Numbered from the stretch's first letter, positions 2,726-61,242 are shown. The stretch: 64,000 nucleotides of DNA from IMGVR_UViG_3300042261_002385:124001-188000; one strand, 5' to 3'. Notes: generated by a model not told the origin, from the letters alone. Program-made: numbers and translations.

Positions 2726-2765
2726 CTTTTTATATATAATTTGATAAAAACAGAAATCAAAATTT

Positions 2766-4112: not shown

Positions 4113-4312
4113 TGAACTCAATAAATCTAAATATGACTTCACTAGAAGTTAAAGCAGAGTTAAGACCCTTAAAGTGCGAATGGACACGTGAAATGGCTAA
4201 AGATTTACAACATCATAGAGATGTGGATATGAGTTCCTTTGAACTGTTTATTGCAAAACAAATAAGAGCTAATAATCGCAAAAATTCAATCAAAAATATA
4301 TTTCTTAATTAA
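4112..4312 (+). CDS. Small protein containing a gp23-type major capsid protein segment
   Basis: VKAELRPLKCEWTREMAKDLQHHRDVD resembles gp23-family AKSRQLKAxWxxELAQDLxAxHGxD; ends NRKNSIKNIF. Confidence 0.6.
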   Translation: MNSINLNMTSLEVKAELRPLKCEWTREMAKDLQHHRDVDMSSFELFIAKQIRANNRKNSIKNIFLN

Positions 4313-7239: not shown

Positions 7240-7242
7240 TTT

Positions 7243-8247: not shown

Positions 8248-8261
8248 AGTCTATATATTAA

Positions 8262-8894: not shown

Positions 8895-9115
8895 TTTGTC
8901 AAGAATTCTTTTGGTCCTGATATTTCCATAGTAGTTATTTCTGCCTTACTTAATAATTCCTGAGCTTTCTTCCCATCGACTACCATACTACAAAATCTGT
9001 GTGTTACTGGAAGTTCTCCAGATTCTGAACAAGGTATTGTTAAGATATTATCTCTTTTCATTTTTTCTCTCACTTGTTCTAATTTAGACTCCTCACATAA
9101 TATACAAATTCTCAT
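8870..9115 (-). CDS. Hypothetical protein
   Basis: 81 aa ORF in a tightly packed operon. Confidence 0.55.
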   Translation of the reverse strand: MRICILCEESKLEQVREKMKRDNILTIPCSESGELPVTHRFCSMVVDGKKAQELLSKAEITTMEISGPKEFLTKWNLKIIK

Positions 9116-9123
9116 ACATTTAT

Positions 9124-9372
9124 TTATTTTTTTAAAAGATTTCTTATTTCTCTAGCTTCAATTAGCGTCATTGGTTTTCTTTTTGAAAAATCTACAATTT
9201 CTTTCAAATCTTCGATTGAGTATGAATTTAATAATAGTTCTTTAATACTTTCACACTCATGATAAGTCATGAGTAAAGCTTCTGATATACTATCGCTCCA
9301 TGTATTATCTTCAGATGAAACTAGAAATTTATTATCCGATCTTCTTTTTATTAGTTTTACCATTTTTGTCAT
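9124..9372 (-). CDS. Hypothetical protein
   Basis: 82 aa ORF in operon; ends EAREIRNLLKK. Confidence 0.55.
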   Translation of the reverse strand: MTKMVKLIKRRSDNKFLVSSEDNTWSDSISEALLMTYHECESIKELLLNSYSIEDLKEIVDFSKRKPMTLIEAREIRNLLKK

Positions 9373-9378
9373 TTATTT

Positions 9379-10353: not shown

Positions 10354-10368
10354 TCTATTTTTTAATTT

Positions 10369-12891: not shown

Positions 12892-12943
12892 TTAATAAAA
12901 TTATTTTAATAAACTATATATTAAATGTTAAACTAAGACATTG

Positions 12944-14062: not shown

Positions 14063-14101
14063 GTAGTATATATTAATTTTTAATAATATAGTTAGTGACT
14101 A

Positions 14102-16831
14102 TCAACTAAATGGATTTATCTGACCTAATACTTGACTCCAAGTAGCAGAAGTTCTTAAAAATGTGAATCCAACTACATCAACTTTATTAGCAGAGGCAGA
14201 ATAAGTTCCACCAGCCCATTTAACACTCTGTGTGACTCCCTCAATATGAACAATTGTTGGTGAGTAAGCTGTAGCTCCTTGGCTAATAATAATAGTAGCT
14301 GTGACCGCTCTGTTATTAGTTGTTGGAACATTGACAAATTTAGCTGTGTAATTAGTTGAAGCCGTTCCGTGATACCAAATCGAACCTAAAGTGAAATCAT
14401 AAACAACATTAGATGCTGTAGCACCTGTTGGTTCTGAGCCGATAACTTCTATGACTTCAGCCAACTCAGATAAACCTGTAGATGAGAATGTGGCAGTAAG
14501 AGTCAAACTGTCACCTACTGATGTTCCACTTGTTCCAGCAGTACCAGAAGTGCCATTTGTTCCAGAAGTACCATTAATTCCAGAACTACCACTTGTGCCA
14601 GAAGTTCCTGCCTCACCACTTGTTCCAGAGGTTCCGGTCGTTCCGGATTCACCACTAGTGCCAGAAGTTCCAGTAGTGCCAGAAGTTCCAGACTCACCAG
14701 TAGTCCCAGAGGTTCCCGATTCACCGCTTGTGCCAGAAGTTCCAGTGGTTCCAGATTCTCCACTTGTTCCAGACGTTCCAGTAGTTCCTGCCTCACCACT
14801 TGTGCCAGAAGTTCCTGCCTCACCACTTGTGCCAGAAGTTCCTGCCTCACCACTTGTGCCAGAGGTTCCTGTATCACCACTTGTTCCGGACGTTCCAGAT
14901 TCCCCGCTTGTTCCAGACGTTCCAGTAGTTCCAGATGTTCCTGCCTCACCACTTGTGCCAGAGGTTCCCGTATCACCACTTGTTCCGGACGTTCCAGATT
15001 CCCCGCTTGTTCCAGACGTTCCAGTAGTTCCAGTAGTTCCAGATGTTCCTGCCTCACCACTTGTTCCAGAAGTTCCATTATCACCGGAAGTTCCGGATGT
15101 TCCTGTATCACCACTTGTTCCGGATGTTCCTGTATCACCACTTGTGCCAGAGGTTCCAAGACCACTACTTCCAGAGGTTCCATTTAAACCACTAGAACCA
15201 GAGGTTCCAGTAGAACCATCTATTCCATTGACACCACTTAGTCCGCTTGTTCCGCTTGAACCAGAGGTTCCTCGAGTACCGGAAGTTCCGGAAGTTCCAA
15301 CCGTTCCAGATACACCACTAGAACCAGAGGTTCCTCGAGTTCCAGAAGTTCCGGAAGTTCCTAAACCAGAAGTACCACTAGAACCAGCAGATCCGGATGT
15401 TCCAGACGTGCCACTAGCACCTGACGAACCAGAAGAGCCACTGCTACCCGAAGTTCCGGAGGTTCCGGAAGTTCCTTTAGTTCCGCTAGTTCCAGATGTG
15501 CCATTATCACCTGAACTACCAGATGTTCCGTTGATACCTGAGCTACCGGATGTTCCGGAAGAACCATTAAGACCAGCGGGTCCTTGAATGGCTCCCATAT
15601 CAACCCAACCATCAGCATTTGAGGCGGCTGACGTTGGATCATATATGTATAGATGACTAGTATCTTGTAAGATATATGTATCTAAAAGATTTGGTTGTGG
15701 TATAGAATAGGATGTTCCTCTACTTTGAGTTAGTGATGAGTATGATGCTTCTACACCCTGTGGACTTAAAGTCTGACCAGGTATACCCTGTGCACCAGAT
15801 GTTCCAGAAGTGGCGGAAGTTCCACTTGTTCCAGATGAACCTCCACCAGAAGTTCCAGATGAACCGCTAGTTCCAGATGAACCGCTAGTTCCAGTTTCAC
15901 CACTAGAACCTGATGACCCACTAGATCCAGATGACCCACTAGACCCAGATGAACCCGAACTGCCGGATTCACCACTTGTGCCGTTTTGACCAGAAGTTCC
16001 GCTTGAACCCGAAGAACCAGTTTCGCCAGAAGTTCCAGATTCACCAGAACTTCCACTTGAGCCAGAAGAACCGGAAGTTCCGTATTCTCCTGAAGTTCCC
16101 GATGTTCCATCAACACCTGATGAGCCAGCATCACCTTCTGCGCCACTTATACCAGAAGTTCCGGAAGTTCCGGTCACTCCGGAGCTTCCTGAGCTACCAC
16201 TTGTTCCAGTTGTTCCACTTTGACCAGAACTTCCAGAAGTGCCATTTGTGCCGTTTACACCTGATGAACCACTTGTTCCAGTTTCACCGGAACTACCACT
16301 TGTTCCAGTTGTTCCACTTTGACCAGAACTTCCAGAAGTGCCACTAGATCCTGACGATCCACTAGACCCTGAAGAACCCGAAGCACCGGACACACCTGAA
16401 GTTCCTGACGTTCCACTTGTGGTGCTAGAACTACCACCAGCAAAAGCTGTACCGTTAATTATCAAAGATGATGTATCAGAAGATAAAATAAATGGTTGAG
16501 ATTCACTACCAAGATTGATGCTATTCATCATAACAGAATTTCCATCTGTTGATATAGTGACACCACCTATATAGATTGTATTACCAGAAACATGAAGACT
16601 CTTCCATCTCAAACTAGATGTTCCCAAATCATATTGAGAGTCAACATCCGGTAAAACATGACCTGAGACGACTGTATTACTTGAAAGTATGCTAAATGTT
16701 GGAGAAGTCACTTCGGTAAACTGAAATGGAACTCCAGCTACCCAACCTCTTCCATTCCATTTGTATCTTACACCTTGAGCATTTACATAAACGTCTCCAA
16801 CATTCGGGTTATTTGGCCAATTTGTATTCAC
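14102..16831 (-). CDS. Collagen-like (Gly-Thr/Ser-Ser) fibre protein
   Basis: N-term WPNNPNVGDVY..YKWNGRGW and HVLPDVDSQYDLGTSSLRWKSLHV fibre-type domains; two long G-X-Y tracts (GTS/GSS/GES); C-terminal beta domain (YDFTLGSIWYH...VKWAGG). Confidence 0.75.
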   Translation of the reverse strand: MNTNWPNNPNVGDVYVNAQGVRYKWNGRGWVAGVPFQFTEVTSPTFSILSSNTVVSGHVLPDVDSQYDLGTSSLRWKSLHVSGNTIYIGGVTISTDGNSVMMNSINLGSESQPFILSSDTSSLIINGTAFAGGSSSTTSGTSGTSGVSGASGSSGSSGSSGSSGTSGSSGQSGTTGTSGSSGETGTSGSSGVNGTNGTSGSSGQSGTTGTSGSSGSSGVTGTSGTSGISGAEGDAGSSGVDGTSGTSGEYGTSGSSGSSGSSGESGTSGETGSSGSSGTSGQNGTSGESGSSGSSGSSGSSGSSGSSGSSGETGTSGSSGTSGSSGTSGGGSSGTSGTSATSGTSGAQGIPGQTLSPQGVEASYSSLTQSRGTSYSIPQPNLLDTYILQDTSHLYIYDPTSAASNADGWVDMGAIQGPAGLNGSSGTSGSSGINGTSGSSGDNGTSGTSGTKGTSGTSGTSGSSGSSGSSGASGTSGTSGSAGSSGTSGLGTSGTSGTRGTSGSSGVSGTVGTSGTSGTRGTSGSSGTSGLSGVNGIDGSTGTSGSSGLNGTSGSSGLGTSGTSGDTGTSGTSGDTGTSGTSGDNGTSGTSGEAGTSGTTGTTGTSGTSGESGTSGTSGDTGTSGTSGEAGTSGTTGTSGTSGESGTSGTSGDTGTSGTSGEAGTSGTSGEAGTSGTSGEAGTTGTSGTSGESGTTGTSGTSGESGTSGTTGESGTSGTTGTSGTSGESGTTGTSGTSGEAGTSGTSGSSGINGTSGTNGTSGTAGTSGTSVGDSLTLTATFSSTGLSELAEVIEVIGSEPTGATASNVVYDFTLGSIWYHGTASTNYTAKFVNVPTTNNRAVTATIIISQGATAYSPTIVHIEGVTQSVKWAGGTYSASANKVDVVGFTFLRTSATWSQVLGQINPFS
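14510..16440 (-). repeat. Gly-X-Y (GTS/GSS) coding repeat tracts, ~14510-15585 and ~15775-16440
   Basis: 9-nt periodic, GC-richer sequence (e.g. ccacttgtgccagaagtt units) standing out from the AT-rich background; boundaries approximate. Confidence 0.85.
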
Positions 16832-38356: not shown

Positions 38357-39178
38357 TCAATTAAATATATTTTGTTTAAATCTCATGGTCCCATCAGGAT
38401 TTAAGGTGCAAATAAATTGAAATTGTGTTTGATAAAATCCATCGATTTCTTTATCCGAGATGAATTTATCAGAAACGCCTTCGAAGACTGACCAATTCTG
38501 TTTACTTATTAATTCACAACTATAAGAGTCACAAACTCTTACCACTAAATATTCACTACTACCAATATTTAGATTTATTATCTGACCTGGTTCAAATTTT
38601 AGATTTGAAGTAAATGCAACTTTATATTCATTTTTAATTAAATCAAAGTAATTGAAAACTGACTTCTCTAAATATTCACTTCTGAAATAACTATTATTTA
38701 CCGGAATTAAGCAATCTGATATATTTACATATTCAGCTAAGTTAAATTCATCAAAAGATGGAATATATTTCCAATTTTTACCAGTATCATTATCATATCC
38801 AAAAAAACTTCTTAGAGAGTTTAGTAGGAAGTCATAAGTTTTTGGCGCTTTTTGTTTTAACATAGAAAGACCAGTTCCATACCCACCATCGGATAAAACT
38901 ATTTGAACACCAGAAAGTTGGTAGAATTTTATTTGTAGAATATCTTGTAATATTTTTTGTGTATTAAATTCATACTCAGTATCAGAGTAGTAAGAATCAT
39001 CAGTAATAGAGGGTCTTTTTTTAGTTCTTATACCATAGGTGTTAGAATTATTTCTTATTACAGCTTGTCCACCGGTTCCTATTCTTAAGTCATTATCACC
39101 AAAGATAAATAACTTTTCAGGAGTGGATTTTACATCATCAACTGACCAATATCCGTTAAAAATTTCAATTTCTTTCAT
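38357..39178 (-). CDS. Conserved phage protein with FIFGDN..GGQA..R motif (possibly macro-like N-domain)
   Basis: FIFGDNDLRIGTGGQAVIRNNSNTYGIRTKKRP, GYGTG; fold assignment tentative. Confidence 0.5.
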   Translation of the reverse strand: MKEIEIFNGYWSVDDVKSTPEKLFIFGDNDLRIGTGGQAVIRNNSNTYGIRTKKRPSITDDSYYSDTEYEFNTQKILQDILQIKFYQLSGVQIVLSDGGYGTGLSMLKQKAPKTYDFLLNSLRSFFGYDNDTGKNWKYIPSFDEFNLAEYVNISDCLIPVNNSYFRSEYLEKSVFNYFDLIKNEYKVAFTSNLKFEPGQIINLNIGSSEYLVVRVCDSYSCELISKQNWSVFEGVSDKFISDKEIDGFYQTQFQFICTLNPDGTMRFKQNIFN

Positions 39179-39530
39179 TTGTATTTTTGTAATTTATGTG
39201 ATCTGAAATTGTTGGTAGTTTTGTTTCTTTCCACTTATCAATTCCAAGTAAATAGTCTATTTTCTTTTGTCTGAGTGTTTGTTTATCATAAATACTCATC
39301 ATATCGATATAATTTCCAATTAATTGTCGGTCAATAGAACACCTAATGCCTCTTTTTGAAACATATTCTCTATAAACAGGTGTGTGATATTCATAGGCAT
39401 AGTATTGACCATAATCGTGGTCAAAATAATCCCCATCATCATACCAATAATAAAACCAATCATTATACTCTTGATAACTTTCTTTATAAATATCTCGAGC
39501 TAAAATGTCCCATTTATTCTTTTTCATCAA
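39165..39530 (-). CDS. Hypothetical Tyr/Asp-rich protein
   Basis: 121 aa; contains LRQKKIDYLL motif. Confidence 0.55.
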   Translation of the reverse strand: MMKKNKWDILARDIYKESYQEYNDWFYYWYDDGDYFDHDYGQYYAYEYHTPVYREYVSKRGIRCSIDRQLIGNYIDMMSIYDKQTLRQKKIDYLLGIDKWKETKLPTISDHINYKNTNERN

Positions 39531-39861
39531 CTAGTTTTCCTATTCTCCAATCTCTTACATTAATCTTGAAGTCCTCAAAAGAATGAGATTGTGACATTAT
39601 TTCTATTTTAGTATTTATTTCTTCTATTAAGTCTTTTAATTCCGAATCTCTTACTCTACCCCATCCATCATAAACACAAACTATTTCGTCTCTTTTAGAT
39701 GCGACAAACCACATAGTTGCGTTTTTATAGATATCTAAATATTGTTGAGTTTGTTGGACATACTCAATTCCCGATTGACGAGTTTTACCATCAACGTTAA
39801 TATAAACTACAAATATAGGATTGTTTAGGTCTAGCTCTTGATTTTTTTGAGATTGAAACAT
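39514..39861 (-). CDS. Hypothetical protein
   Basis: 115 aa; ends VRDWRIGKLV; TTAGTATATA promoter variant upstream. Confidence 0.55.
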   Translation of the reverse strand: MFQSQKNQELDLNNPIFVVYINVDGKTRQSGIEYVQQTQQYLDIYKNATMWFVASKRDEIVCVYDGWGRVRDSELKDLIEEINTKIEIMSQSHSFEDFKINVRDWRIGKLVDEKE

Positions 39862-39897
39862 AAGTTTTCTCTTTTATATACTAAAAAAGAAAAAAAG

Positions 39898-40377
39898 TTA
39901 ATCTAGATATCTTACGTCTTTATGTGGGTCTTTAGATTGACCAGAATGTGTCCATAGTCTAGCAAATGGTGTAGTGAAAAAATTGTTATAAATTAATGTA
40001 TCATCTATATGTAGGTTTATTCCCATCTCTTTACAATATTCACCTTTGACTTTGTCCCAGTCTTCTGGATTAAATTTTCTTTGAACTGTGCCATCAGGAA
40101 ACTGAATTTTTCCAGTCTGTTCAGCTCCAATGCTTTTTAAATAGTCATATACTGAAAATTTGTGCGTCCATTTAATACCAAAGTCATTTAATTGTTTTTC
40201 AAATTCACTATCCCAACGACCACCTGTAATAATATGGACTTCACCTCCTGAGTTTACAAAAGATTGTGTAAGAAATGCGAAGAACTCTGGCATTCCATCA
40301 ATAACACCGTGAACATCAAGTCCAATTTTAAATTTAGAACCTAATTCTTCATTTACCATATTAGTAAATTTTTTCAT
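39898..40377 (-). CDS. HAD-superfamily phosphatase (nucleotidase-like)
   Basis: IGLDVHGVID (motif I, DxH variant), K..YC, LHIDD (motif IV); N-term MKKFTNMVNEE; TTTAATATATA at 40384-40394. Confidence 0.7.
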   Translation of the reverse strand: MKKFTNMVNEELGSKFKIGLDVHGVIDGMPEFFAFLTQSFVNSGGEVHIITGGRWDSEFEKQLNDFGIKWTHKFSVYDYLKSIGAEQTGKIQFPDGTVQRKFNPEDWDKVKGEYCKEMGINLHIDDTLIYNNFFTTPFARLWTHSGQSKDPHKDVRYLD

Positions 40378-40396
40378 AGAAAGTATATATTAAATA

Positions 40397-40789
40397 TTAA
40401 AAATATCTTCTTAAAACCTTATTCAGCTTAGCTTCTCTTATTTCATCAGGTTCAAGTGACAATTCAGTATATTCAATAAATATAGTAAAAATTAAACCAG
40501 GTAAAAAGAAAAATAAAAAACTTATCAAGTATCCTAAAAAAATTGATACTATCACATTTAAACTTAAATAACTATCAACTAAATAGATAGAAAAAAAATT
40601 GATAGAAGTAAATAACAAAGAAAATAATACTAGATATTTTTTTTCAGATTTTGCAAAATCATCACTGTAAATTGAAAAGAAGATACCTGCAAAAGAACCA
40701 AAAGATGCTAATGCTGATAAAGATAGAGCTGATATCAAAAGATTTTTAAAGCTTTTTCTGAAAATCTTTTGCATTTTATAAAAGAACAT
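40397..40789 (-). CDS. Membrane protein (about 3 TM helices)
   Basis: Hydrophobic stretches; ends EIREAKLNKVLRRYF. Confidence 0.6.
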   Translation of the reverse strand: MFFYKMQKIFRKSFKNLLISALSLSALASFGSFAGIFFSIYSDDFAKSEKKYLVLFSLLFTSINFFSIYLVDSYLSLNVIVSIFLGYLISFLFFFLPGLIFTIFIEYTELSLEPDEIREAKLNKVLRRYF

Positions 40790-40793
40790 TAAT

Positions 40794-41420
40794 TCAATTA
40801 TTTTTTTCTAAGAATGTCTTAGTGTAGACATCTTTTATAGCTTGAACACCATTTGGTTTAATTTCTCGAGTTCCTATTCCAGCAAAATTTTGATATAGTA
40901 TTTTTGGACAATTACACTCAACATATGACAATGAAGAATAAGACCACCTAAACCATTTGTCTCTCATTTGGTCAAAAACATAAACTTCTTTTTGATTATT
41001 TATAGCCATTTGACAAGCGTATCCGGTTCCACCGTCTACCATATCATATTTTCCTTTATTGTAATATCCTTTTGGATTCTTTTCACCTTTTTTTACAATT
41101 GAACCAATTGCGATTACTTGTTCAGAATACTTTACTTGTGCCCAATTACGAGCAAGTAGATTCATATATTTATGAATACCATATCGATTTAACCATTTAT
41201 TTGCCCTATTTACCTCAACAACGCCTTCTTTATAATCATCTTCTGATATTTCAACTTTATTATCCGAGACGTGATAAGATGTTTTGTAAGAGTAAGCACG
41301 AGTTTTGACTCCAAATTCTTTTCCAATATTTTCCCATTCAGTGTCTGAACCAACAGCACCTCCGGAATGACAAACAATATTTGTCAAATCTAACTTTTTG
41401 TTATCAAAAATATCAATCAT
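40794..41420 (-). CDS. SLOG-superfamily (DprA/YspA-like) nucleotide-binding protein
   Basis: CHSGGAVGSDTEW, VDGGTGYACQMA, FAGIGTR. Confidence 0.65.
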   Translation of the reverse strand: MIDIFDNKKLDLTNIVCHSGGAVGSDTEWENIGKEFGVKTRAYSYKTSYHVSDNKVEISEDDYKEGVVEVNRANKWLNRYGIHKYMNLLARNWAQVKYSEQVIAIGSIVKKGEKNPKGYYNKGKYDMVDGGTGYACQMAINNQKEVYVFDQMRDKWFRWSYSSLSYVECNCPKILYQNFAGIGTREIKPNGVQAIKDVYTKTFLEKNN

Positions 41421-41673
41421 CTAACAATTCTCTTAGTAAAAATTCTCTGTTAAGTTCAGTATTTTTGTCGAAAATGACACTAATTTGTGAAAAAACTCTT
41501 CCTTCAAAATAAGTATTTGATACAGTGATTTTATATTTTGAATTAAGATAAAATGGATTAACATACTTTATAAGTAACATTCTTGCATTGTCTATATTAG
41601 TTACAACTTCCGGAAAGGTGTATGTTTTTAAAATCTGTTCTTTATTTTCTAAATATAAATTTACCTCTGTCAT
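41413..41673 (-). CDS. Hypothetical protein
   Basis: 86 aa; ends LNREFLLRELLDD. Confidence 0.5.
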   Translation of the reverse strand: MTEVNLYLENKEQILKTYTFPEVVTNIDNARMLLIKYVNPFYLNSKYKITVSNTYFEGRVFSQISVIFDKNTELNREFLLRELLDD

Positions 41674-41858
41674 ACACCTAAATTTTTTTTATATATTCTT
41701 TTTATTTTCAAAACTCTACTTTGTATTTTAAAAAACTTATTTTTTTTATTTATCATTTCATCATAAAGAGAAATACTTACACCACCCATACCATAAGAAG
41801 AGTTTATTTGCATCTTTAACAACATCAATTCATTCCTTAGTTTATTCATGATGGTCAA
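41670..41858 (-). CDS. Hypothetical protein
   Basis: 62 aa; ends SRVLKIKRIYKK. Confidence 0.5.
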   Translation of the reverse strand: MTIMNKLRNELMLLKMQINSSYGMGGVSISLYDEMINKKNKFFKIQSRVLKIKRIYKKNLGV

Positions 41859-42441
41859 TTTGATGAATTTCTCTTTTTTCCATAATTCTCATAATATCTC
41901 CTATATTAAAAGGTCGATATTCTCCAAAAATTCTATAAGCTACATCTACTCCGACATCCATAGAACGACCGTAATCAGGAATTGAACCGTGACTGTGTCC
42001 ATAAAGATGAATTACTCCTTTGTGACTTCCATTCCAAACTCTATGTGAATAGTGTGAAAGGAATAACTCAGTTTTTCCTAAACTAAGATGTAAAACATCT
42101 TGAACAGATGAAAAAAGGTCGATGGGATTAAAAGTAGTGTCGTGAAATTTTACTTCTTTGTCAACAATATGTTGGTCGTGATTTCCTAAAATAAGATGTA
42201 TATTCTGACAAACAATTGAGTCTCTGAACAATTTGATATTATGTATGCCTCCAAAACTCCAGTCTCCTAAATGATAAAGTATATCGTCTTCTTTTACATA
42301 GCGGTTGATACCATCAACTAAAGCTTGGTTCATTTCCCAAACAGAATTAAAGTTTCGATAACCTCTTTGCCAACGAGAAACACCGGGTCCGGCTATATTT
42401 GTATGGCCATAGTGAGTGTCTGATGTTATCCATATATTCAT
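41842..42441 (-). CDS. Calcineurin-like metallophosphoesterase
   Basis: SDTHYGH, HLGDW, LILGNHD, SHY, HLYGHSH; TATATTTG box at 42446-42453, 4 nt before ATG. Confidence 0.88.
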   Translation of the reverse strand: MNIWITSDTHYGHTNIAGPGVSRWQRGYRNFNSVWEMNQALVDGINRYVKEDDILYHLGDWSFGGIHNIKLFRDSIVCQNIHLILGNHDQHIVDKEVKFHDTTFNPIDLFSSVQDVLHLSLGKTELFLSHYSHRVWNGSHKGVIHLYGHSHGSIPDYGRSMDVGVDVAYRIFGEYRPFNIGDIMRIMEKREIHQIDHHE

Positions 42442-42514
42442 AAGACAAATATAGTTATTTTTTTAGAACTTTAATAATGTCAATATATAAAATATAAAAA
42501 TTATTAATCACTTA

Positions 42515-43387
42515 ATGAAAAAACTCTCTTCTCAAGTCGGTAACACTCCTCTTTTAAAAATCTCAGATAGAATATTTGCAAAATTTGAAGGTCAAAATCC
42601 TTCTGGTTCAGTGAAAGACAGAATGGCATCTTATATTATAAATGACGCCGAAGAAAGGGGATTAATAAAAAAAGGTGATACAATTATTGAAGCTACTTCT
42701 GGAAACTCTGGTATTGCTTTTGCTTTTTTGGCTTCCGAAAGAGGATATAAGTGTATTATTGTTATGCCAAGAAATATGTCAGAAGAAAGAAAACAAATGT
42801 TAAGACTATATGGGGCAGAATTAATCGAAGTTGAAGATGGTAAATTTGATGAAGCAATTGCACTCAGAGATAGATTAGCTGAAGAAAACGGATACTTCAA
42901 TCCAAATCAATTTCACAACCCACTCAATATAGAAGCTCATATAAAAGGAACAGGAGTTGAGATTTTATATCAACATACAAACACTATTTTAGCTTTTGTT
43001 GATGGAACAGGAACAGGTGGAACTCTTATGGGAACTACAAGACTTTTAAAAATGTATCATCCAAATATGCACGTTGTAGCAGTAGAACCAGCAGAATCTC
43101 CAGTAATGTCTGGTGGAGAACCTGGTTTACACGGAATTCAAGGAATCGGAGATGGTTCTAAATTTATGGTCGATTTGAAAGAAGTTGATGACATTATTGT
43201 TATATCTACAGAAGAAGCCATTCAAAGAGCAAAAAGACTTGCTACTGAACAAGGTCTATTTGTTGGAATAAGTTCTGGGGCTAACATCTTAGCGTCTGAA
43301 AGATTTTTAGAAAAGAACAGTCACTTAGAAGGTAATATCATAACTATTCTTTGTGATAGAGGTGAGAGATATCTTTCTTGTTTTTAA
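42515..43387 (+). CDS. cysK: Cysteine synthase (PLP-dependent, CysK/CysM family)
   Basis: VGNTPL, AKFEGQNPSGSVKDR (PLP Lys), EATSGNSGI, GTGTGGT, HGIQGIG, GLFVGISSGAN, DRGERYLS. Confidence 0.93.
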   Translation: MKKLSSQVGNTPLLKISDRIFAKFEGQNPSGSVKDRMASYIINDAEERGLIKKGDTIIEATSGNSGIAFAFLASERGYKCIIVMPRNMSEERKQMLRLYGAELIEVEDGKFDEAIALRDRLAEENGYFNPNQFHNPLNIEAHIKGTGVEILYQHTNTILAFVDGTGTGGTLMGTTRLLKMYHPNMHVVAVEPAESPVMSGGEPGLHGIQGIGDGSKFMVDLKEVDDIIVISTEEAIQRAKRLATEQGLFVGISSGANILASERFLEKNSHLEGNIITILCDRGERYLSCF

Positions 43388-43427
43388 TTTTTTAAAATTA
43401 ATATATATCTAAAACTTATTGATAATA

Positions 43428-43952
43428 ATGAGATATTTACAACTATTTGAAAACTTTGACGATAATAAGCCAGTAATCGATGCTCTTAAAACTATCCTAA
43501 GATGCATTAATAGTGGAAAAAAAATATCATCTGAAATAAATGGCGGTAAGTTAATGGACTTACACGATAAGTGTGAAGATCCGCAAGTGCAAGAATTTTT
43601 AGTGAAAGCAGCTGAAGTAGCAGGAGAAGAAATTCAAGGAACTATTATTGATTTAAATTTTGAATTTGATAAAAATGAATTAGAAGGTTTAATTAGAATA
43701 TTAGAGGCGAATCCAGAAAAAGATGAAGATTCTAATTTTAAAATCGAAAGATTTACAAAATTAACAAATGAGTCTTTACACAATTTTCATCATATATCCG
43801 AAGAAGAGTTAAATCTATTTTCTCAAGTTCCAGCCCTCGAAGAACTAATTACTAAAATGAAAGTTAGACTTGAAAAAGATGGTATACATTTCGATGAAAA
43901 CGATTTAGAGACTGTAGAAATTCTTAAGTCACAAGGAATAATCACTGAATAA
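43428..43952 (+). CDS. Putative internal head protein (CTS-like; start revised to 43428)
   Basis: MRYLQLFENF; second internal copy KIERFTKLTNES; ATTAATATATA at 43397-43407. Confidence 0.55.
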   Translation: MRYLQLFENFDDNKPVIDALKTILRCINSGKKISSEINGGKLMDLHDKCEDPQVQEFLVKAAEVAGEEIQGTIIDLNFEFDKNELEGLIRILEANPEKDEDSNFKIERFTKLTNESLHNFHHISEEELNLFSQVPALEELITKMKVRLEKDGIHFDENDLETVEILKSQGIITE

Positions 43953-44646
43953 AAGATTTTAGACTATCCCAAAGTATTCTAAAAACATCATCTATCTGAT
44001 CATATCTAATTTTAATTAGATTAATAAAATTCTCTTCAGAGAATATTTCTTTCTTTTTATCTAATTCTTTGAATTTATCAAAAGTCTTTACACCACCGAT
44101 TTCACTTATCGGTTCAAAATGGTGTCTACCTAAAAAATCAACACAAATAATATATTTAGGTAGATAAAAACTGAAACCATTCCAATTTTCAATATATTCT
44201 ACATTCCATTTATTTAGAAAATCTTGGATCTCTTTTTTTCCGACTAAATCTGATTGAGTAATTTTATCTAAAATAATTGACTCTTCATTTTGTCGAAATT
44301 CAGGTGCTTTTCCTTCTAAGTGACTTGTGGGCCTTTGTTCATATACGACTCCATTATAAACAATTTTAATATTATTTAAAGCACCTGTATATTGAGTCAA
44401 TGAGTAATCATATTTTTCTCCCCAAACTTTTTTAGATTCTTTTATAAACTCTTCAGTTGTTTTTTTATCAATTTTTTTCTCTGGGCATCTTCCAGATAAA
44501 TGCTTGGAAACATTTTGATTATAAACTACACCATCAAGCTCAATTTGAACTTGCTCTGTAAGCGTAATTTTATCAGGTAAGTTAGGATAATTATACTTAT
44601 ATCCGTGTTTATTTCTAGCCTTTTCTAAGAAATCTCGTTTTTTCAC
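43942..44646 (-). CDS. Homing-endonuclease-like protein (DUF723-type repeats plus Vsr/PD-(D/E)xK-like domain), possibly inactive
   Basis: FLEKARNKHGYKYNY and EEFIKESKKVWGEKYDYSLTQY repeats; FSFYLPKYIICVDFLGRHHF where FDFYLP...IEYDG.QH is expected. Confidence 0.6.
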   Translation of the reverse strand: MKKRDFLEKARNKHGYKYNYPNLPDKITLTEQVQIELDGVVYNQNVSKHLSGRCPEKKIDKKTTEEFIKESKKVWGEKYDYSLTQYTGALNNIKIVYNGVVYEQRPTSHLEGKAPEFRQNEESIILDKITQSDLVGKKEIQDFLNKWNVEYIENWNGFSFYLPKYIICVDFLGRHHFEPISEIGGVKTFDKFKELDKKKEIFSEENFINLIKIRYDQIDDVFRILWDSLKSFIQ

Positions 44647-44752
44647 ATATTATATATAAAAAATCCTCACCCTCTTTCAAGATTTTTTTTATTTTTATTG
44701 AAAGGGGGTGTTATTAATTTAATATATAAAAATAAAAAAATAGAATTTAATT

Positions 44753-45973
44753 ATGGCTAAAAAACAAGAATCGGGCAAAAAATTTGAATTCTCTAAGATT
44801 GGAAATATTATGAACAACATTGCTAAAAATGTTCCAATTATTATTGATGACAAAATCAAAGAAAAAAGTTTTATCTCTACAGGAGTTTATTTATTAGATG
44901 CTGCATTATCAGCTAAATTACTCGGAGGTGGAATTCAATCAAACAGAATCACTGTATTCGCAGGTGAGTCTGGAACAGGTAAATCATTCTTAGCATACTC
45001 AGTTGCTAAACACGCACAAAAAGCAGGATATGGTATCGTCTATATCGACACAGAATATTCAGTAGAATTAGGAGAAATTAATAAATTTGGAATTGACGCA
45101 TCACCTGAAAAATTCATTTTAGTTCGTTCAAATAAAGTAGAAGATATCAATATTACATTGAGTCAATTATTAGACGAATTGAAAGAAGCTAAATTATCAG
45201 GTCAAGAAGTTCAACCACTTATGATTGTATTAGATTCAATTGGACAGATGGCTTCTAATAAAGAAAAGGCTGACTTACTTAAAGGAGATATTAAACAGGA
45301 TATGACTAAAGCTAAAGCAATTGGTTCACTATTCCGTTCAATTAATACAGACTTAGGATTCTTAGAAATTCCTATGGTGGTTTGTAACCATACTTACTTG
45401 ACTCAGGATTTATTTCCACAAGAAGTACTAAAAGGTGGTCGTTCATTAGTTTACTCAGCATCTGTAATTGGTATGATGTCTAAATCAAAACTTAAGACAG
45501 GAGAGGAAGATGATATGGACTTAGGTCAATCTGGTATTAATGTTCTCTTCAAGACAGCTAAAAATCGTTTAGCGAAACCTAAGAAAATTAGATTTGATAT
45601 CTCTTTTAATCATGGTATGAATCCTTATACAGGACTTGATGCTTTCTGTCGTCCAGAATACTTTGAACAAATTGGAATTGCTCAAGGTAAAATGGACGTA
45701 GACAAGAAGACCGGAGAAATGAATTTCACACCAGGTGGAAACAGATGGTATGTAAGTCACTTAAGTAAGTCGTTTACAACTAAACAATTATTTACACAAG
45801 AAATATTTACAGAAGAGGTTCTTAAAAGAATGGAGCCTATCGTGAATGAATATTTCCGTTACAAATCTTTAGATGAAATTGAAGAGATTGAAAAACAATT
45901 TACAGAAATTGAAGAAGAAGATGATACAAACGGATTTGTAGATTCAGCAGATGCTGATGATATCTTTGGATAA
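44753..45973 (+). CDS. recA: RecA/UvsX recombinase
   Basis: ISTGVYLLDAAL, FAGESGTGKS Walker A, IDTEYS, IVLDSIG, VVCNHTY, GGRSLVYSAS (T4 UvsX-like); TTTAATATATA at 44718-44728. Confidence 0.92.
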   Translation: MAKKQESGKKFEFSKIGNIMNNIAKNVPIIIDDKIKEKSFISTGVYLLDAALSAKLLGGGIQSNRITVFAGESGTGKSFLAYSVAKHAQKAGYGIVYIDTEYSVELGEINKFGIDASPEKFILVRSNKVEDINITLSQLLDELKEAKLSGQEVQPLMIVLDSIGQMASNKEKADLLKGDIKQDMTKAKAIGSLFRSINTDLGFLEIPMVVCNHTYLTQDLFPQEVLKGGRSLVYSASVIGMMSKSKLKTGEEDDMDLGQSGINVLFKTAKNRLAKPKKIRFDISFNHGMNPYTGLDAFCRPEYFEQIGIAQGKMDVDKKTGEMNFTPGGNRWYVSHLSKSFTTKQLFTQEIFTEEVLKRMEPIVNEYFRYKSLDEIEEIEKQFTEIEEEDDTNGFVDSADADDIFG

Positions 45974-46011
45974 ACTAAACCTAATAAGGTTATAAAAAAT
46001 AAAAAGCTAAA

Positions 46012-46182
46012 ATGTCAAAACAAGAAGTTTATGAACAATTGAAAGCACTGTGGGCTGAGTTTGAAGCAAACCACAACGCAACAAGCAAAGTTTCTGATAC
46101 AAGAGCGCGTAAAGCTTTAGGTGAAATTAAGAAATTGGTTACTCCTTATAGAAACGCATCTGTTGAAGAAGCAAAAAAATAA
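46012..46182 (+). CDS. Histone H1-like (Hc1-family) small DNA-binding protein (not in ORF track)
   Basis: MSKQEVYEQLKALWAEFEANHNATSKVSDTRARKALGEIKKLVTPYRNASVEEAKK*; the RARKA..E..KL...YR..S signature matches Bacteroidota Hc1-type proteins. Confidence 0.72.
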   Translation: MSKQEVYEQLKALWAEFEANHNATSKVSDTRARKALGEIKKLVTPYRNASVEEAKK

Positions 46183-46192
46183 TTTTCAATAA

Positions 46193-46411
46193 ATGAAATA
46201 CAAGATTAAAGAGATTCTTTCAGAAAGAAATGTTAATGTTGATAACTTTCCAATTGAGACCCTATATAAAGTAGGAATGGACAATGTGAAAGAAAACATT
46301 GAGTTTTATTTTGATAAGACTTATACTTGTGAATCAGTTATAAAGGAATTATTTATTCGAGGTATAATTAATTATATCCAGAAAAAGAGTTTTCCTTATT
46401 TAGAAAAATAA
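46193..46411 (+). CDS. Hypothetical protein
   Basis: 72 aa ORF following the Hc1-like gene. Confidence 0.5.
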   Translation: MKYKIKEILSERNVNVDNFPIETLYKVGMDNVKENIEFYFDKTYTCESVIKELFIRGIINYIQKKSFPYLEK

Positions 46412-46451
46412 GGTGGTGGAGTCGGAAGTAATTTCGAGCCTTTTTACAGTT

Positions 46452-46482
46452 AAAACCTTCAGATTATTCTGAAGGTTTTTTT
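46452..46482. terminator. Intrinsic terminator, probably bidirectional
   Basis: aaaaccttcaga-ttat-tctgaaggtttttt between convergent units. Confidence 0.8.
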
Positions 46483-46934
46483 ATTGAAATAAAATATAAT
46501 TTATAAAAAAGTATTGAGTAGAAAATTATATTCAAAGTTCCATAAATTGGCCACAAATGTAATCTATGACCAAAAAAAATACTTAAAACATCAATTAAAA
46601 TTATTGAACCAACAAAGAGAGGAAAAATCCAGTAAATTTTTTTAAAACTTTTTGAAACAATATAATTGTGAAATTTATATTTCCATTTTAGATACGGATT
46701 TTGTAGTTGAGATATTTTGATTTCTCTATCACAAGATTTACAAAGAATTTTAAAGTCTTTAAGATCAAGAATCCTTGATAGTAGGACACCATCTACCAAG
46801 TCAATTTCTTCTTTACAGTTGTAACAAACTTGTCCTTTTCGAATATTCCACTCTAAGTTTTTTCTCCTATTTGAATAAAACATAAGAATAAAAAACAATA
46901 GTATTGGAAGTAAGCAATAAATTAAACTAAACAT
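46464..46934 (-). CDS. Membrane protein with Zn-finger (CYNC...CKSC)
   Basis: N-terminal TM, two CxxC, two C-terminal TM helices. Confidence 0.6.
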   Translation of the reverse strand: MFSLIYCLLPILLFFILMFYSNRRKNLEWNIRKGQVCYNCKEEIDLVDGVLLSRILDLKDFKILCKSCDREIKISQLQNPYLKWKYKFHNYIVSKSFKKIYWIFPLFVGSIILIDVLSIFFGHRLHLWPIYGTLNIIFYSILFYKLYFISIKKPSE

Positions 46935-47389
46935 TAAGCTAAAATTAATTCTAAGAATTTATCTCTTTTTTCAGATTTAGAGAGTTTTTTTATACAATCT
47001 GGACCAATTCCGGACAAAATTGAAGTTGGAACTGTCAATCGCTTACCACATTTTCCACAAAACCCTTCGTGCCAAACTTCTAAAAAATCACTTACACTGT
47101 CATTGATTAGATTCTTCAACATATAGGTAAAAACTTTTACTGATTGTGAATTTTCACTTATCGGTGATTTTTTTCCGTGTTTAAAATTTCCCTGTATACA
47201 AGTTCCAATATATGTATACTGGTCAGGACCAGTAAGAACACTCACAAAAAATAGATTAGAATCTTTAGCTTGTTTTATTTTGTAAGTAAATCTATTACTT
47301 GTTTGAGTATTCAAAAAAGTAACAACTGATTTACCAGAAAACATAAATTTGAGAGCATCTTTTGAGTTAGAAATTTTGTGACCGTTCAT
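46934..47389 (-). CDS. DUF6011-like Zn-ribbon protein (start revised to 47389)
   Basis: CGKCGKRLTVPTSILSGIGPDC; TTTG-N19-TATATTTG promoter at 47407-47437 lies within the longer ORF call. Confidence 0.65.
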   Translation of the reverse strand: MNGHKISNSKDALKFMFSGKSVVTFLNTQTSNRFTYKIKQAKDSNLFFVSVLTGPDQYTYIGTCIQGNFKHGKKSPISENSQSVKVFTYMLKNLINDSVSDFLEVWHEGFCGKCGKRLTVPTSILSGIGPDCIKKLSKSEKRDKFLELILA

Positions 47390-47406
47390 AGTGGAATTAT
47401 TTACTA

Positions 47407-47437
47407 CAAATATAATATAAATAAACGTCAAATCAAA
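47407..47437 (-). promoter_or_regulatory. Bacteroidota-type primary-sigma promoter
   Basis: TTTG-N19-TATATTTG. Confidence 0.6.
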
Positions 47438-54722: not shown

Positions 54723-54750
54723 AAAACCCACTTACAGAGTGGGTTTTTTT
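54723..54750. terminator. Intrinsic terminator, probably bidirectional
   Basis: aaaacccact-tacag-agtgggtttttt between convergent genes. Confidence 0.8.
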
Positions 54751-55031
54751 ATTTCTATATTTTTGTAATATCTAATTTTTATAATATTTTTAGAGTATCT
54801 ACTCATTATTGATTTATTTAATGAAAATTCATCTTTAACATTTAAACCTAAATCAAATATCTTACTAATCGTTCTTTTTCTATTTACATTTTTAGAACCA
54901 TATTCAACTATTTCTGAGGAAGTAGTCATTGGTATATAAGGTACCCAAACGTATCCAGGTTCTAAATTAGAACTCTTCTTTCCTATTTGAATTTTCTGTT
55001 CACCAGGTATTTGATTTTGGTTAACAAACAT
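54732..55031 (-). CDS. Small protein containing the C-terminal segment of a gp23-type major capsid protein
   Basis: LEPGYVWVPYIPM ... KSIMSRYSKNII..RYY resembles gp23-family GYVYAPYxPL ... KGxMTRYAKxxV...FY; interrupted by NRKRTISKIF. Confidence 0.65.
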   Translation of the reverse strand: MFVNQNQIPGEQKIQIGKKSSNLEPGYVWVPYIPMTTSSEIVEYGSKNVNRKRTISKIFDLGLNVKDEFSLNKSIMSRYSKNIIKIRYYKNIEIKKPTL

Positions 55032-55227
55032 TTTTGTAGATTTTATTTATAGAACTTTTTCTTCTTAAAGGTCTTTCGAAAATACCTAACTTTCTGAGTA
55101 TTTCTAAGTCTATTTCTTTTGCTACTTGCTCAGATAAAATTTTAGTAAGTTCAGATTCTATGTCTCTTGTAGAAGTAGAAACAGTATTATTACTATCAAC
55201 CACACCTTTGACTTTATACTTTTTCAC
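55021..55227 (-). CDS. Small protein containing the spine-helix segment of a gp23-type major capsid protein
   Basis: DIESELTKILSEQVAKEIDLEILRKL resembles gp23-family DAEAELxxILSxxIxxEIxREIL; ends RRKSSINKIY. Confidence 0.65.
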   Translation of the reverse strand: MKKYKVKGVVDSNNTVSTSTRDIESELTKILSEQVAKEIDLEILRKLGIFERPLRRKSSINKIYKNVC

Positions 55228-60840: not shown

Positions 60841-61242
60841 TTAATTAAATAGAAACTCTAGCTTCATTAAGTCTTTAACTTTAGCAGTTTGTAGTTCTAA
60901 ATCTTCAAAGTTTATTTTTTCAAAAGGAATTTCATTCTCTACATCCATAAGACTTTTCATCTCCTGAGTAAAAGATTCAGGATCTGTCAGACTTACAGCA
61001 CCTGTAATTGTATTACCATCATTGTCTAGTGCTGGTCTAGGAATTCCATTTTCATCTTTTTCTACCCACTTATCTAAAATTCTCTTTTCCATTTTTAGCT
61101 TATCCTCAACAATTGAAGAAAGTTCTTTAATTATTCTGGATAAACGAAAAGCTGTTGATGCTTTAATATCTAATTCTATAAGAATATTTAAAGACTCGAT
61201 AGTTTCATTAGTTAGTTGAGAATTTTTTACTATTATTGACAT
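60841..61242 (-). CDS. DUF1617-like hypothetical protein
   Basis: TAFRLSRIIKEL...ILDKWVEKDENG pattern recognised from phage proteins near fibre genes. Confidence 0.5.
   Translation of the reverse strand: MSIIVKNSQLTNETIESLNILIELDIKASTAFRLSRIIKELSSIVEDKLKMEKRILDKWVEKDENGIPRPALDNDGNTITGAVSLTDPESFTQEMKSLMDVENEIPFEKINFEDLELQTAKVKDLMKLEFLFN

Follow-up and report, generated by a model that had tools for sequence, protein, structure and literature searches.

A proteome-wide C-terminal tag, predicted to be helical, on otherwise unrelated proteins of huge freshwater phages

Results

Tag-bearing genes in the analyzed window

We examined a window of 64,000 nucleotides (IMGVR_UViG_3300042261_002385:124001-188000) from a 436,265-bp freshwater phage genome. 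The initial annotation had noted that about 10 small, otherwise unrelated proteins of this window share a helix of the pattern R-x-x-[KRS]-[IL]-x-x-[IL], usually near the C-terminus. All 10 peptides are present in the sequence and lie in called ORFs, although only 6 fit that pattern strictly; the other four have V at position 8, or L, F, or T at position 4. Seven end within 2 to 7 residues of the stop codon, whereas three are internal. Genes were called with a simple codon-usage caller of our own, and while stop positions are unambiguous, some start sites, and the status of some very short ORFs, are not.

Five of the C-terminal peptides lie on the minus strand in ORFs between 39514 and 47431. 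The tag RDWRIGKL (39532..39555) is located 5 residues before the stop of a 115-aa ORF (39514-39861), where F-E-D-F-K-I-N-[IV]-R-D-W-R-[IL]-x-x-[IL] is the best-conserved stretch among 10 orthologues, and an AlphaFold2 model places it in the last helix, residues 95 to 114, with a pLDDT of about 85. The tag REAKLNKV (40415..40438) lies 5 residues before the stop of a membrane protein (ORF 40397-40789) for which at least two membrane helices are predicted, with the tag on the soluble tail after the last one; the orthologue in the relative L165 ends in ...TRDAKLNSLFRNLF. The tag REFLLREL (41425..41448) is found 3 residues before the stop of an 86-aa ORF (41413-41673), and its orthologues end in REFLINKIL, RELLIRKIL, REIKLRKIF, and RELKLRQIL, so that position 4 alternates between K and L. 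The tag RVLKIKRI (41694..41717) precedes the stop of a small ORF (41670-41858; 47 to 62 aa, depending on the start chosen) by 7 residues; the L165 orthologue has RVFKVKRVF, and contigs from three other runs carry a 1-nt deletion at 41680, inside the tail after the tag. Finally, a degenerate tag, RDKFLELI (46943..46966), lies 2 residues before the stop of a DUF6011 protein (ORF 46934-47431). This protein matches PF19474 at 1e-10, and the phrog_20259 profile ends before the tag. Its orthologues have RDKKLKTILG, RDSFLKSILG, and RDKFLELILA, but the more distant orthologues in the relatives L160 to L162 stop right after the Zn-ribbon domain and have no tag.

Two internal tag-like peptides, also on the minus strand, are conserved. 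RQKKIDYL (39249..39272) in a 120-aa Tyr-rich ORF (39165-39530) is followed by a 27-residue extension, and the motif is retained in 3 orthologues as RQKKIDYLL, RQKRINHIL, and RNKLIDSLF. REIKISQL (46704..46727) in ORF 46464-46934 is positioned directly after a CxxC...CxxC Zn ribbon and before two membrane helices, and C-x-x-C-x-R-[DE]-x-K-[IL]-x-x-[IL] is conserved in 10 orthologues.

The three remaining, capsid-fragment examples form a variant class with S or T where K normally stands. RKNSIKNI (4277..4300, plus strand) lies 3 residues before the stop of a 66-aa ORF (4112-4312) whose body matches PF07068 Gp23 (5.5e-5) and phrog_138; the orthologue in the relative W02 ends ...RKESINKIFKTKK... 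RKSSINKI (55039..55062, minus strand) lies 5 residues before the stop of a 68-aa capsid-fragment ORF (55021-55227), and orthologues have RRKNSINRIYKNVC in the relative L163 and RRSNSINKIT in the relative W01. RKRTISKI (54858..54881, minus strand) is internal to a 99-aa ORF (54732-55031), with 41 residues after it. This is the weakest of the 10: the ORF resembles the C-terminal part of a gp23-type capsid protein only by eye, searches against protein families gave no hit, and no orthologue was found among the relatives.

The motif is enriched at C-termini across the genome and in relatives

To determine whether the motif exceeds chance, we compared its frequency at C-termini with that in composition-matched shuffles. 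In the whole genome, R..[KRS][IL]..[IL] ends within 5 residues of the C-terminus in 34 of 533 proteins, whereas shuffling of whole proteins gave 0.70 and shuffling of only the last 25 residues gave 1.17 (standard deviation, 1.06; maximum of 5 in 500 shuffles). The reversed motif occurs once. In the window alone the count was 3 against 0.16 expected, and no shuffle reached 3. A motif-free test anchored on the C-terminus recovered the same pattern, with R at -10 (z = 7.9), K at -7, and I/L at -6 and -3. By contrast, internal occurrences in this genome were at expectation (19 observed against 23.5). Most often exactly 2 residues follow the motif (20 of 34 proteins here and 59 of 112 in W01), with an overall range of 0 to 7 variable residues. 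The observation in the initial annotation is therefore confirmed, but the number of carriers was greatly underestimated: there are 34 to 38 in this genome, about one protein in fourteen, and 87 to 128 in each of three relatives, about one in eight in these 640-kb genomes. By the strict count, the relatives LR756502, LR745206, and LR756504 have 112, 106 to 108, and 87 such proteins, respectively, against about 3 expected, while the 735-kb relative LR756501 has 2 against 1.4. Relatives in IMG/VR with a UvsX identity of 57% or more also carry the tag.

The carriers are otherwise unrelated. The 38 carriers of this genome share no BLASTP similarity once the tag is cut off, and the carriers of four genomes fall into 324 BLAST clusters, 262 of which have only tagged members. 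Almost all are small proteins without a Pfam family, and Pfam and PHROGs searches found almost nothing in about 60 carriers. Carriers make up 7 to 13% of all genes and cluster in arrays of small genes far from the head genes.

Selection acts on the protein

We next asked at which level the motif is maintained. Codon use at R and K equals genome usage (P = 0.21 and 0.12), and I and L are used about equally and independently at both positions (80/73/61/61). In 89 orthologue pairs, R is kept in 79 and the two hydrophobic positions in 86 and 84; key positions are 67% identical, compared to 39% for the body of the protein and 39% for the variable tag positions. The motif is anchored to its own stop codon whatever follows, and tagged genes that end a transcription unit in front of a terminator hairpin still carry it. 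The existence of DUF6011 orthologues with and without the tag shows that it is portable.

Of the carriers, 3 to 9% per genome are predicted membrane proteins, and on N-terminally anchored carriers the tag is cytoplasmic by the positive-inside rule. Proteins with membrane anchors carry the tag at about the background rate.

A second C-terminal tag in LR756501

LR756501 lacks the tag described above (tag A). Instead, about 30 to 40 of its unrelated proteins end in ...R-[IV]-[FY]-[ST]-x-x-DPYGEE-x-W-x-x (tag B). Fragments derived from the capsid protein and from the neighboring 699-aa gene carry tag A in one lineage and tag B in the other. We found no description of either tag in the literature that we consulted.

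Discussion

Comparison with known peptide signals

The T4 capsid-targeting sequence, on internal proteins and Alt, is likewise a short portable peptide shared by unrelated proteins of T4-like phages that sends them to one destination. However, it is an N-terminal peptide of about 10 residues, is cleaved by the prohead protease at an L/I-x-E site, and marks a handful of virion proteins, whereas the tag is C-terminal, has no evident cleavage site and no conserved E at a fixed offset, and occurs also on membrane proteins. C-terminal degrons of bacterial AAA+ proteases (the ssrA tag and the MuA-type ClpX motif) and their adaptors (SspB) also lie at the C-terminus, face the cytoplasm, and let one machine read many unrelated substrates, and these phages encode Clp components. 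Known degrons are nevertheless unstructured and depend on the last three to five residues and the free carboxylate, whereas the tag is helical in the model, has a variable tail and conserved internal copies, and is encoded in each gene, whereas the ssrA tag is added by tmRNA; ARAGORN found no tmRNA in any of the five genomes.

Clamp-binding C-terminal peptides (the PIP box and the tails of T4 gp43, gp33, and gp55) are short hydrophobic motifs by which many proteins dock on one hub; the T4 type is an extreme C-terminal hydrophobic or aromatic peptide of the form L-D-F-L-F or S-L-F-D-M-F, found on the polymerase and the late-transcription factors. In this phage and its relatives the polymerase C-terminal half ends in ...SVVMDIF(S/G)G... 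and the gp33-like protein in KL(E/D)FLF(N/D) (KLEFLFN in this phage), the classical T4 type, which does not fit the tag. The tag has an invariant R and K and no aromatic pair. Encapsulin cargo-loading peptides and cohesin-dockerin modules are C-terminal add-ons that bring unrelated proteins to one scaffold, but the sequences are not similar, dockerins are domains of about 70 residues, and encapsulin peptides bind the inside of an HK97-fold shell that membrane-anchored carriers could not reach. Finally, the second helix of the UVR hairpin (PF02151; UvrB and UvrC, the ClpC middle domain, and McsA) reads [IL]-R-D-x-[IL]-x-x-L, close to hydrophobic-R-D-x-K-[IL]-x-x-[IL], and such a hairpin is present in both the phage's ClpC-like protein and a clade-specific 129-aa protein. 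The spacing differs by one residue, however, the first helix with E-E-A-A is absent, and no carrier matches PF02151.

A putative docking helix and its possible partner

Taken together, these data identify a portable tag that acts at the protein level, with the consensus [K]-x-x-[IL]-R-[DEN]-x-K-[IL]-[NKDE]-x-[IL]-[L/G]-x, appended to hundreds of otherwise unrelated proteins in one clade of freshwater huge phages related to the 'Mahaphage' genomes. In our view it is a short amphipathic helix that, where G-[IL] follows, would form a classical glycine helix cap. The conserved residues (the hydrophobic residue before R, then R, K, and the two I/L) fall on one face of this helix and the other face varies freely, which is the signature of a peptide read by one binding site. 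We hypothesize, with moderate confidence, that the helix docks its carrier, whether soluble or membrane-anchored, onto one shared cytoplasmic partner. Our analyses establish the existence of the tag, its enrichment and portability, selection on the protein, a helical propensity, and a cytoplasmic side, whereas docking itself, a single receptor, the identity of that receptor, and the consequences of binding, including any effect on half-life or any contact with lipid, are inferred or conjectural. The interpretation in the initial annotation, a portable address tag (docking helix, degron, or localization signal) complementary to a capsid-targeting tag, is thus partly supported: portability and action as a peptide hold, but docking, degradation, and localization all remain possible.

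As to the partner, our best but tentative guess is the phage's own Clp machinery, a ClpC-like double-ring unfoldase that has lost its N-terminal adaptor domain but keeps a ClpP-binding loop, possibly reached through a small UVR-hairpin protein, so that tagged accessory proteins would be unfolded or degraded on schedule. Both leads rest only on which genomes carry them. The ClpC-like protein is present in every tag-positive genome tested and absent from the tag-negative genomes G011 and G012, and no Clp_N domain occurs in any tag A genome. The UVR-hairpin protein is present in all 9 tag-positive genomes, is absent from the genomes G010 (also tag-negative) and G011 and from LR756501, and gives only a marginal hit in G012. 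However, all tag-positive genomes form a single clade, so any clade-specific gene would show the same distribution, and the phyletic argument amounts to about one independent event. ClpP is missing from tag-positive G004 (95% complete) and ClpS from tag-positive G005, both are present in tag-negative G010 to G012, and LR756501 has a tag but no ClpP or ClpS. A complex prediction for the Clp pair gave no answer. The predicted helicity, the 0 to 7 variable residues after the motif, and the conserved internal copies also do not fit a classical degron that depends on a free, unstructured C-terminus. Only the proteins absent from LR756501 were screened as candidates, and a core phage protein or a host protein is equally possible as the receptor.

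Alternative explanations

The alternative that survives best, although we consider it unlikely, is a C-terminal degron read directly by a host AAA+ protease such as ClpXP, which would give early accessory proteins a short, uniform lifetime without any phage-encoded receptor. The anchoring to the C-terminus, the nature of the carriers as small accessory proteins in arrays, and the cytoplasmic orientation are consistent with this, as is the phages' investment in proteolysis and ribosome rescue (ClpP paralogues, ClpS, and SmpB). The tag is, however, predicted to be helical and partly packed, its terminal residues and tail length vary, conserved internal copies exist, the motif does not resemble ssrA, and two lineages with different tags would need different host recognition sites. 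Slightly less likely is a self-association helix, through which tagged proteins would bind one another or themselves to give dimers or a mixed assembly. The helix is amphipathic, with paired basic and acidic positions (R, D/E, K) that could form salt bridges between helices, and many small phage proteins act as dimers, but 8 to 10 residues are short to drive association, and the strict conservation of R fits a defined pocket better.

A cargo-loading signal that takes proteins into the capsid for injection, as a C-terminal counterpart of the T4 sequence or of encapsulin peptides, is less likely still. The capsid is T4-like (PF07068 major capsid protein and PF07230 portal), several fragments of the capsid protein and of the neighboring 699-aa gene carry the tag, and the initial annotation reported N-terminal capsid-targeting-like peptides on other proteins. 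Nevertheless, the membrane-anchored carriers with a cytoplasmic tag make a capsid-related role unlikely to be general, carriers lie far from the head genes, and none of the 22 genes preceded by a T4-type TATAAATA box is a carrier. A membrane-binding helix like the C-terminal amphipathic helices of MinD or FtsA, which have a broad hydrophobic face and net positive charge, also appears unlikely: the putative helix is amphipathic and has basic residues, but only three or four hydrophobic residues are present, D/E/N are frequent at positions 1, 5, and 6 so that net charge is near zero, and some carriers already have membrane anchors. Least likely, and already largely refuted, is a nucleic acid signal at gene ends (translational coupling, termination, recombination between gene cassettes, or a promoter for the next gene) with the peptide as a by-product, because although 14 of 38 carriers overlap the next start codon, ...GGNATATGA (G-I-stop with an overlapping ATG) is common, and ATA and TTA codons are somewhat preferred at the two I/L positions, codon choice at R and K equals genome usage, I and L interchange freely although their codons differ, the tag is also present where a terminator or a convergent gene follows, and the backwards-read control pattern is rare.

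In the reading that we favor, the motif is a lineage-specific docking helix, and tag and partner change together between lineages, which would explain why the 735-kb relative uses a different C-terminal tag (DPYGEE-x-W) on a comparable set of proteins. The finding points to an undescribed address tag that hands many small phage proteins to one common partner.

Genomic context and gene content

We first placed the phage among its relatives by means of its UvsX protein (window 44753-45973). The genome is a single contig of 436,265 bp with 31% G+C in IMG/VR, of which the window is bases 124001-188000, and its UvsX is 75% identical to those of the uncultured phages LR756502 (642 kb) and LR745206 (635 kb), 60% to that of LR756504 (636 kb), 49% to that of LR756501 (735 kb), and 32% to those of the Prevotella Lak phages, which places it among the huge "Mahaphage" genomes of Al-Shayeb et al. 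2020 (PMC7162821). Near-identical DNA occurs in lake, freshwater, and drinking-water metagenomes from at least 11 studies, but it was found in no RNA data set. Genes were called with a simple codon-usage caller, which gave 533 genes at 94% coding density for this genome and 925-1,004 genes at 92-94% for the four relatives, all under table 11, and no other genetic code was needed.

In the middle of the tagged small genes is a gene (window 42515-43387, +) that by its sequence is a full-length cysteine synthase (CysK-like) gene, is 77% identical to the copy in LR745206, and looks like an auxiliary metabolic gene. A very strong upstream motif, (T)T-AATATATA, lies in front of 139 of 532 genes (in the window, for example, upstream of the genes starting at 44753, 42515, 54140, and 55605) at two preferred distances from the ATG, 12-14 nt or 25-33 nt, and is probably the main promoter element of the phage. 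Only one tag carrier has it directly upstream. A T4-type late promoter box (TATAAATA) precedes 22 genes, none of them a carrier, but because the dominant motif AATATATA precedes genes of all classes, carriers could not be assigned to early or late expression.

Enrichment of the motif at C termini

The initial annotation had listed ten peptides that share a short helix-like pattern, usually near the C terminus, in about 10 unrelated small proteins. All ten peptides are present, although only six fit the stated pattern strictly. We expected a loose pattern in an AT-rich, K/I/L-rich proteome to be due to chance, but this was not the case. Genome-wide, R..[KRS][IL]..[IL] occurs 53 times against 24 expected, and the whole excess lies at C termini. 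In 34 proteins the motif ends within 5 residues of the end, whereas whole-protein shuffles gave 0.7 and shuffles of only the last 25 residues, which keep the local composition, gave 1.17 with a maximum of 5 in 500 shuffles. Internal copies are at expectation (19 against 23.5), and the reversed motif occurs once. A test that uses no motif at all, residue enrichment at each position counted from the C terminus, recovered R at -10 (z = 7.9), K at -7, and I/L at -6 and -3. Most often exactly two residues follow the motif (20 of 34). The refined consensus from 254 instances is [K]-x-x-[IL]-R-[D>E>N>K]-x-K-[I/L]-[N/K/D/E]-x-[I/L]-[L 49%, G 24%, I 13%]-x, and typical endings are RDSKLDDLGI, RNKKLNALGI, and REEKIQNIIK. 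The observation thus holds and is the visible tip of a proteome-wide feature, to which we refer as tag A.

With the tag removed, the 38 carriers of this genome share no BLASTP similarity with one another or with any other protein of the genome. Across four genomes, 388 carriers fall into 324 clusters, 262 of which have only tagged members. Carriers are short, with a median of 92-111 aa against 141-188 aa for other proteins, and 25 of the 38 lie in the small-gene arrays at 360-436 kb of the genome. Scans of about 60 carriers against Pfam or PHROGs gave almost nothing, the only hits being DUF6011, Gp23 fragments, GH108, an acyl-carrier-like domain, riboflavin kinase, and BtpA. Besides the full-length gp23-type capsid gene (genome 267436-269208), the phage and its relatives encode many small free-standing ORFs that are fragments of that protein (window 4112-4312, +; 55021-55227, -; and, by eye, 54732-55031, -), several of which carry the C-terminal tag. 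These fragments could represent decoys, assembly factors, or decaying copies.

Constraint on the peptide, conservation, and portability

We next asked whether the constraint acts on the protein or on the nucleic acid. At the R and K positions, codon usage is the same as in the rest of the genome (p = 0.21 and 0.12), and I and L, whose codons differ at the DNA level, are used about equally and independently at both hydrophobic positions (80/73/61/61), with only a mild preference for ATA and TTA. The motif keeps its distance to its own stop codon whatever follows, whether an overlapping start, a gap, a terminator hairpin, or a convergent gene. The constraint is therefore on the peptide, although the frequent G-I-stop ending with an overlapping ATG may add a small contribution from translational coupling to the last two residues only.

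In 89 ortholog pairs among the tag-positive genomes, R is kept in 79 and the two hydrophobic positions in 86 and 84. Key positions are 67% identical, while the protein bodies and the variable tag positions are both 39% identical. For the ORF at window 39514-39861, the stretch F-E-D-F-K-I-N-I-R-D-W-R-I-x-x-L is the best-conserved part of the protein in ten orthologs. In the DUF6011 protein (window 46934-47431) the tag is present in most orthologs but is missing in the more distant ones (those at loci L160-L162), which stop right after the Zn-ribbon domain, and it lies outside the PHROG profile; it is therefore an appended module. Two examples from the initial annotation are internal but still conserved: in the ORF at window 46464-46934 the motif follows a Zn ribbon and precedes two membrane helices in all ten orthologs, and in the ORF at window 39165-39530 it is followed by a 25-27-residue extension. 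A free C terminus is therefore preferred but not obligatory. We also compared contigs from four other freshwater runs over window 39165-45000; none of the 40 differences inspected, of 453 in total, falls inside a tag, which gives too little power for a population-level test. Contigs from three other freshwater runs lack one base at window 41680, in the few codons after the tag of the ORF at 41670-41858, and this deletion would change only the tail after the tag and the overlap with the next gene.

Predicted structure and topology

An AlphaFold2 model built on ten sequences (mean pLDDT 81) places the tag of the ORF at window 39514-39861 in the last helix, residues 95-114, with pLDDT about 85. 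A Foldseek search of this model against the PDB found no match at an E value of 0.001 or better, and an ESM Atlas feature search gave no usable hit. On a helical wheel the conserved residues (the hydrophobic residue before R, then R, K, the two I/L, and the following L) lie on one face, as we infer from the consensus. About 3-9% of carriers have predicted membrane helices, similar to or slightly below the background. The N-terminally anchored carriers have no basic residues before the hydrophobic segment and a cluster of them after it, so that by the positive-inside rule the soluble domain and the tag are predicted to be cytoplasmic.

Distribution of the tag and a second tag in LR756501

The strict motif at C termini was found in 112 of 971 proteins of LR756502, 108 of 947 of LR745206, and 87 of 925 of LR756504, each against about 1.5 expected. 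In LR756504 the offset is mostly one residue rather than two, and LR756501 has the motif in 2 of 1,004 proteins. A degenerate DNA pattern for tag plus stop codon, compared with its backwards control, confirmed this result and extended it to six larger IMG/VR contigs (G001-G006, of which G003 and G006 overlap) whose UvsX is 72-85% identical. The W03-like contig G009 (UvsX 57%; W03 is our label for one of the relatives) gave a weaker signal, 18 against 11. The 21-kb loci around uvsX in dozens of further contigs also show the tag. Contig G010 (597 kb, UvsX 55%) has a variant in which K is not kept, R-x-x-x-I-x-x-[IL]-[IL], and G012 (391 kb, complete) shows nothing. In L224, an IMG/VR contig of 597 kb from a more distant relative (locus 2173-3593 and 6955-16581), there is an array of five small paralogs ending in a variant tag, R-x-x-x-I-x-x-[IL]-[IL], as well as a separate paralog family with a shared C-terminal ...(C)DG-x-(D/E)-x-(I/V)-x-x-(L/F)... 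segment.

The C-terminus-anchored profile of LR756501, in contrast, showed W at -3 (z = 9), E at -5 and -6, Y at -8, and D at -10. About 30 proteins by inspection, or 42 by a looser pattern, end in ...[KE]-[IV]-x-R-[IV]-[FY]-[ST]-x-x-D-P-Y-G-E-E-x-W-x-x (tag B). These otherwise unrelated proteins, for example at record positions 145891-146127, 197630-197863, and 555792-556034 of LR756501.1 (loci L051-L087), include membrane proteins and range from 55 to 843 aa. Small proteins that cluster with the major capsid protein or with the neighboring 699-aa gene carry tag A in the A lineage and tag B in LR756501, although this clustering is single-linkage and should be read with care. Two sister lineages with different tags on comparable sets of proteins is what co-evolution of a tag with its receptor would produce. 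Literature searches on the DPYGEE sequence, on C-terminal motifs of jumbo phages, on Mahaphages, and on ClpP in huge phages returned no description of either tag in the literature that we could search.

Search for a receptor

To identify candidate receptors, we looked for proteins that are shared by the tag-positive genomes but missing from LR756501, a screen that left out core phage proteins and host proteins. Of the 533 proteins, 23 have reciprocal best hits in the three tag-positive relatives but not in LR756501, and 15 of these have no hit there at all. Among the 15 are ClpS, a ClpP paralog, a retropepsin-like PF05618 protein, and a 129-aa protein with a UVR motif (genome 93717-94106). The phage encodes a proteolysis and rescue set (genome 32044-34176, -; 249289-249573, -; 326476-327138, +; 385810-386535, +; 81465-82031, -; 79290-79724, -) that comprises a ClpC-like unfoldase without an N-domain, ClpS, two ClpP paralogs plus a shorter ClpP-like protein, and SmpB, which was recognized by eye. 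The tag-A genomes encode two or three ClpP paralogs, ClpS with its N-degron pocket residues intact (by eye), SmpB (by eye), and a 710-aa double-ring ClpC-like unfoldase that has no Clp_N domain, has a UVR-type middle domain and, by eye, a G-V-G-F loop of the kind that binds ClpP. LR756501 has a ClpB-like protein with a Clp_N domain and, by eye, no such loop, and it has no ClpP and no ClpS. No tmRNA was found, and no Lon or FtsH is encoded in the five genomes.

An association of the tag with ClpP or ClpS looked promising because both are absent from LR756501, which lacks tag A, but it failed on a wider sample: ClpP is missing in the tag-positive contig G004, ClpS is missing in the tag-positive contig G005, and both are present in the tag-negative contigs G010 to G012. 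Other clade-specific candidates, namely the PF05618 protein, unknown proteins of 167, 148, and 217 aa, and a 554-aa multi-copy protein, also do not track the tag. The 554-aa protein (genome 432903-434567, -) has no Pfam match, is conserved in most tag-positive genomes with six paralogs in LR756504, and is absent from all tag-negative genomes tested. Two proteins still track the tag. The ClpC-like protein is present in all tag-positive genomes tested and in G010, which has the variant tag, and is absent from G011 and G012. The UVR-hairpin protein is present in all nine tag-positive genomes, is absent from G010, G011, and LR756501, and gives a marginal hit in G012. Because the tag-positive genomes form one clade, so that the sample is effectively one gain event, this is weak evidence. 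A single-sequence AlphaFold2 model of the UVR-hairpin protein, of low confidence (pLDDT 59), is all-helical with a terminal hairpin. A complex prediction with the ClpC-like protein, ClpS, and a 67-aa carrier (genome 417168-417371) together returned no answer (score 0.00) and counts neither for nor against binding.

Alternative readings and possible roles of the tag

Among alternative readings, a membrane-binding helix is not convincing, because the tag has too few hydrophobic residues and a near-neutral charge. The tag is unlikely to be a general capsid cargo signal, because membrane proteins carry it, and it is not an ssrA-type tag, since no tmRNA was found, it is gene-encoded and predicted to be helical, and its tail varies. 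It is also not the clamp-binding tail. The polymerase and the gp33-like protein of these phages have classical T4-type tails, ...VMDIF... and ...KLEFLFN. The latter ends a 133-aa protein (window 60841-61242, -; KLDFLFD in relatives), as expected of a gp33-like factor, and the family B DNA polymerase is split into two distant genes (genome 317542-318975, +, and 203521-205047, -), with a C-terminal half that ends ...VMDIFSGFGKGGF. The gp45 C-terminal domain family PF09116 was not found, so the clamp gene was not located. The tag is not the T4 capsid-targeting peptide, which is N-terminal and cleaved, and a nucleotide-level signal is largely ruled out.

Taken together, these data partly support the interpretation in the initial annotation: the idea of a portable address tag is supported, whereas its proposed role as a docking helix, degron, or localization signal is not established. 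The analysis itself demonstrates that the tag exists, that it is enriched at C termini, that it is appended to unrelated proteins, and that selection acts on the peptide, with its helical and cytoplasmic placement resting on predictions; a single receptor, the identity of that receptor, and any binding or turnover that would follow are inferred. We consider it about as likely as not that the tag is a docking helix read by one shared cytoplasmic partner, and within that reading the ClpC-like machinery of the phage is a possible but doubtful partner.

More tentatively, huge phages of this clade may run a proteome-wide "postcode" system, in which a short C-terminal peptide marks roughly a tenth of all phage proteins, chiefly the fast-evolving accessory genes of unknown function, for one phage-encoded receptor. 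That receptor could be an unfoldase or protease acting as a timer, or a scaffold that gathers client proteins. Tag and receptor would co-evolve, so that sister lineages would use mutually unintelligible tags, R-D-x-K-L-x-x-L-G-I in one and DPYGEE-x-W in the other.

The existence of a second, unrelated tag in a sister lineage suggests that such tags are common in very large phages, where they can be found with a simple residue-enrichment scan anchored on the C terminus. The tags could serve as markers to classify these uncultured phages and as portable peptides for engineering. Most genes of huge phages have no known function, and a tag on 7-13% of them would link hundreds of such proteins to one partner and probably one fate, so that a single peptide could be used to fish for that partner. 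If the partner is the phage's own Clp machinery, this would be a virus-encoded system for timed protein turnover, and if it is a scaffold, it would be a client-recruitment code in a phage.
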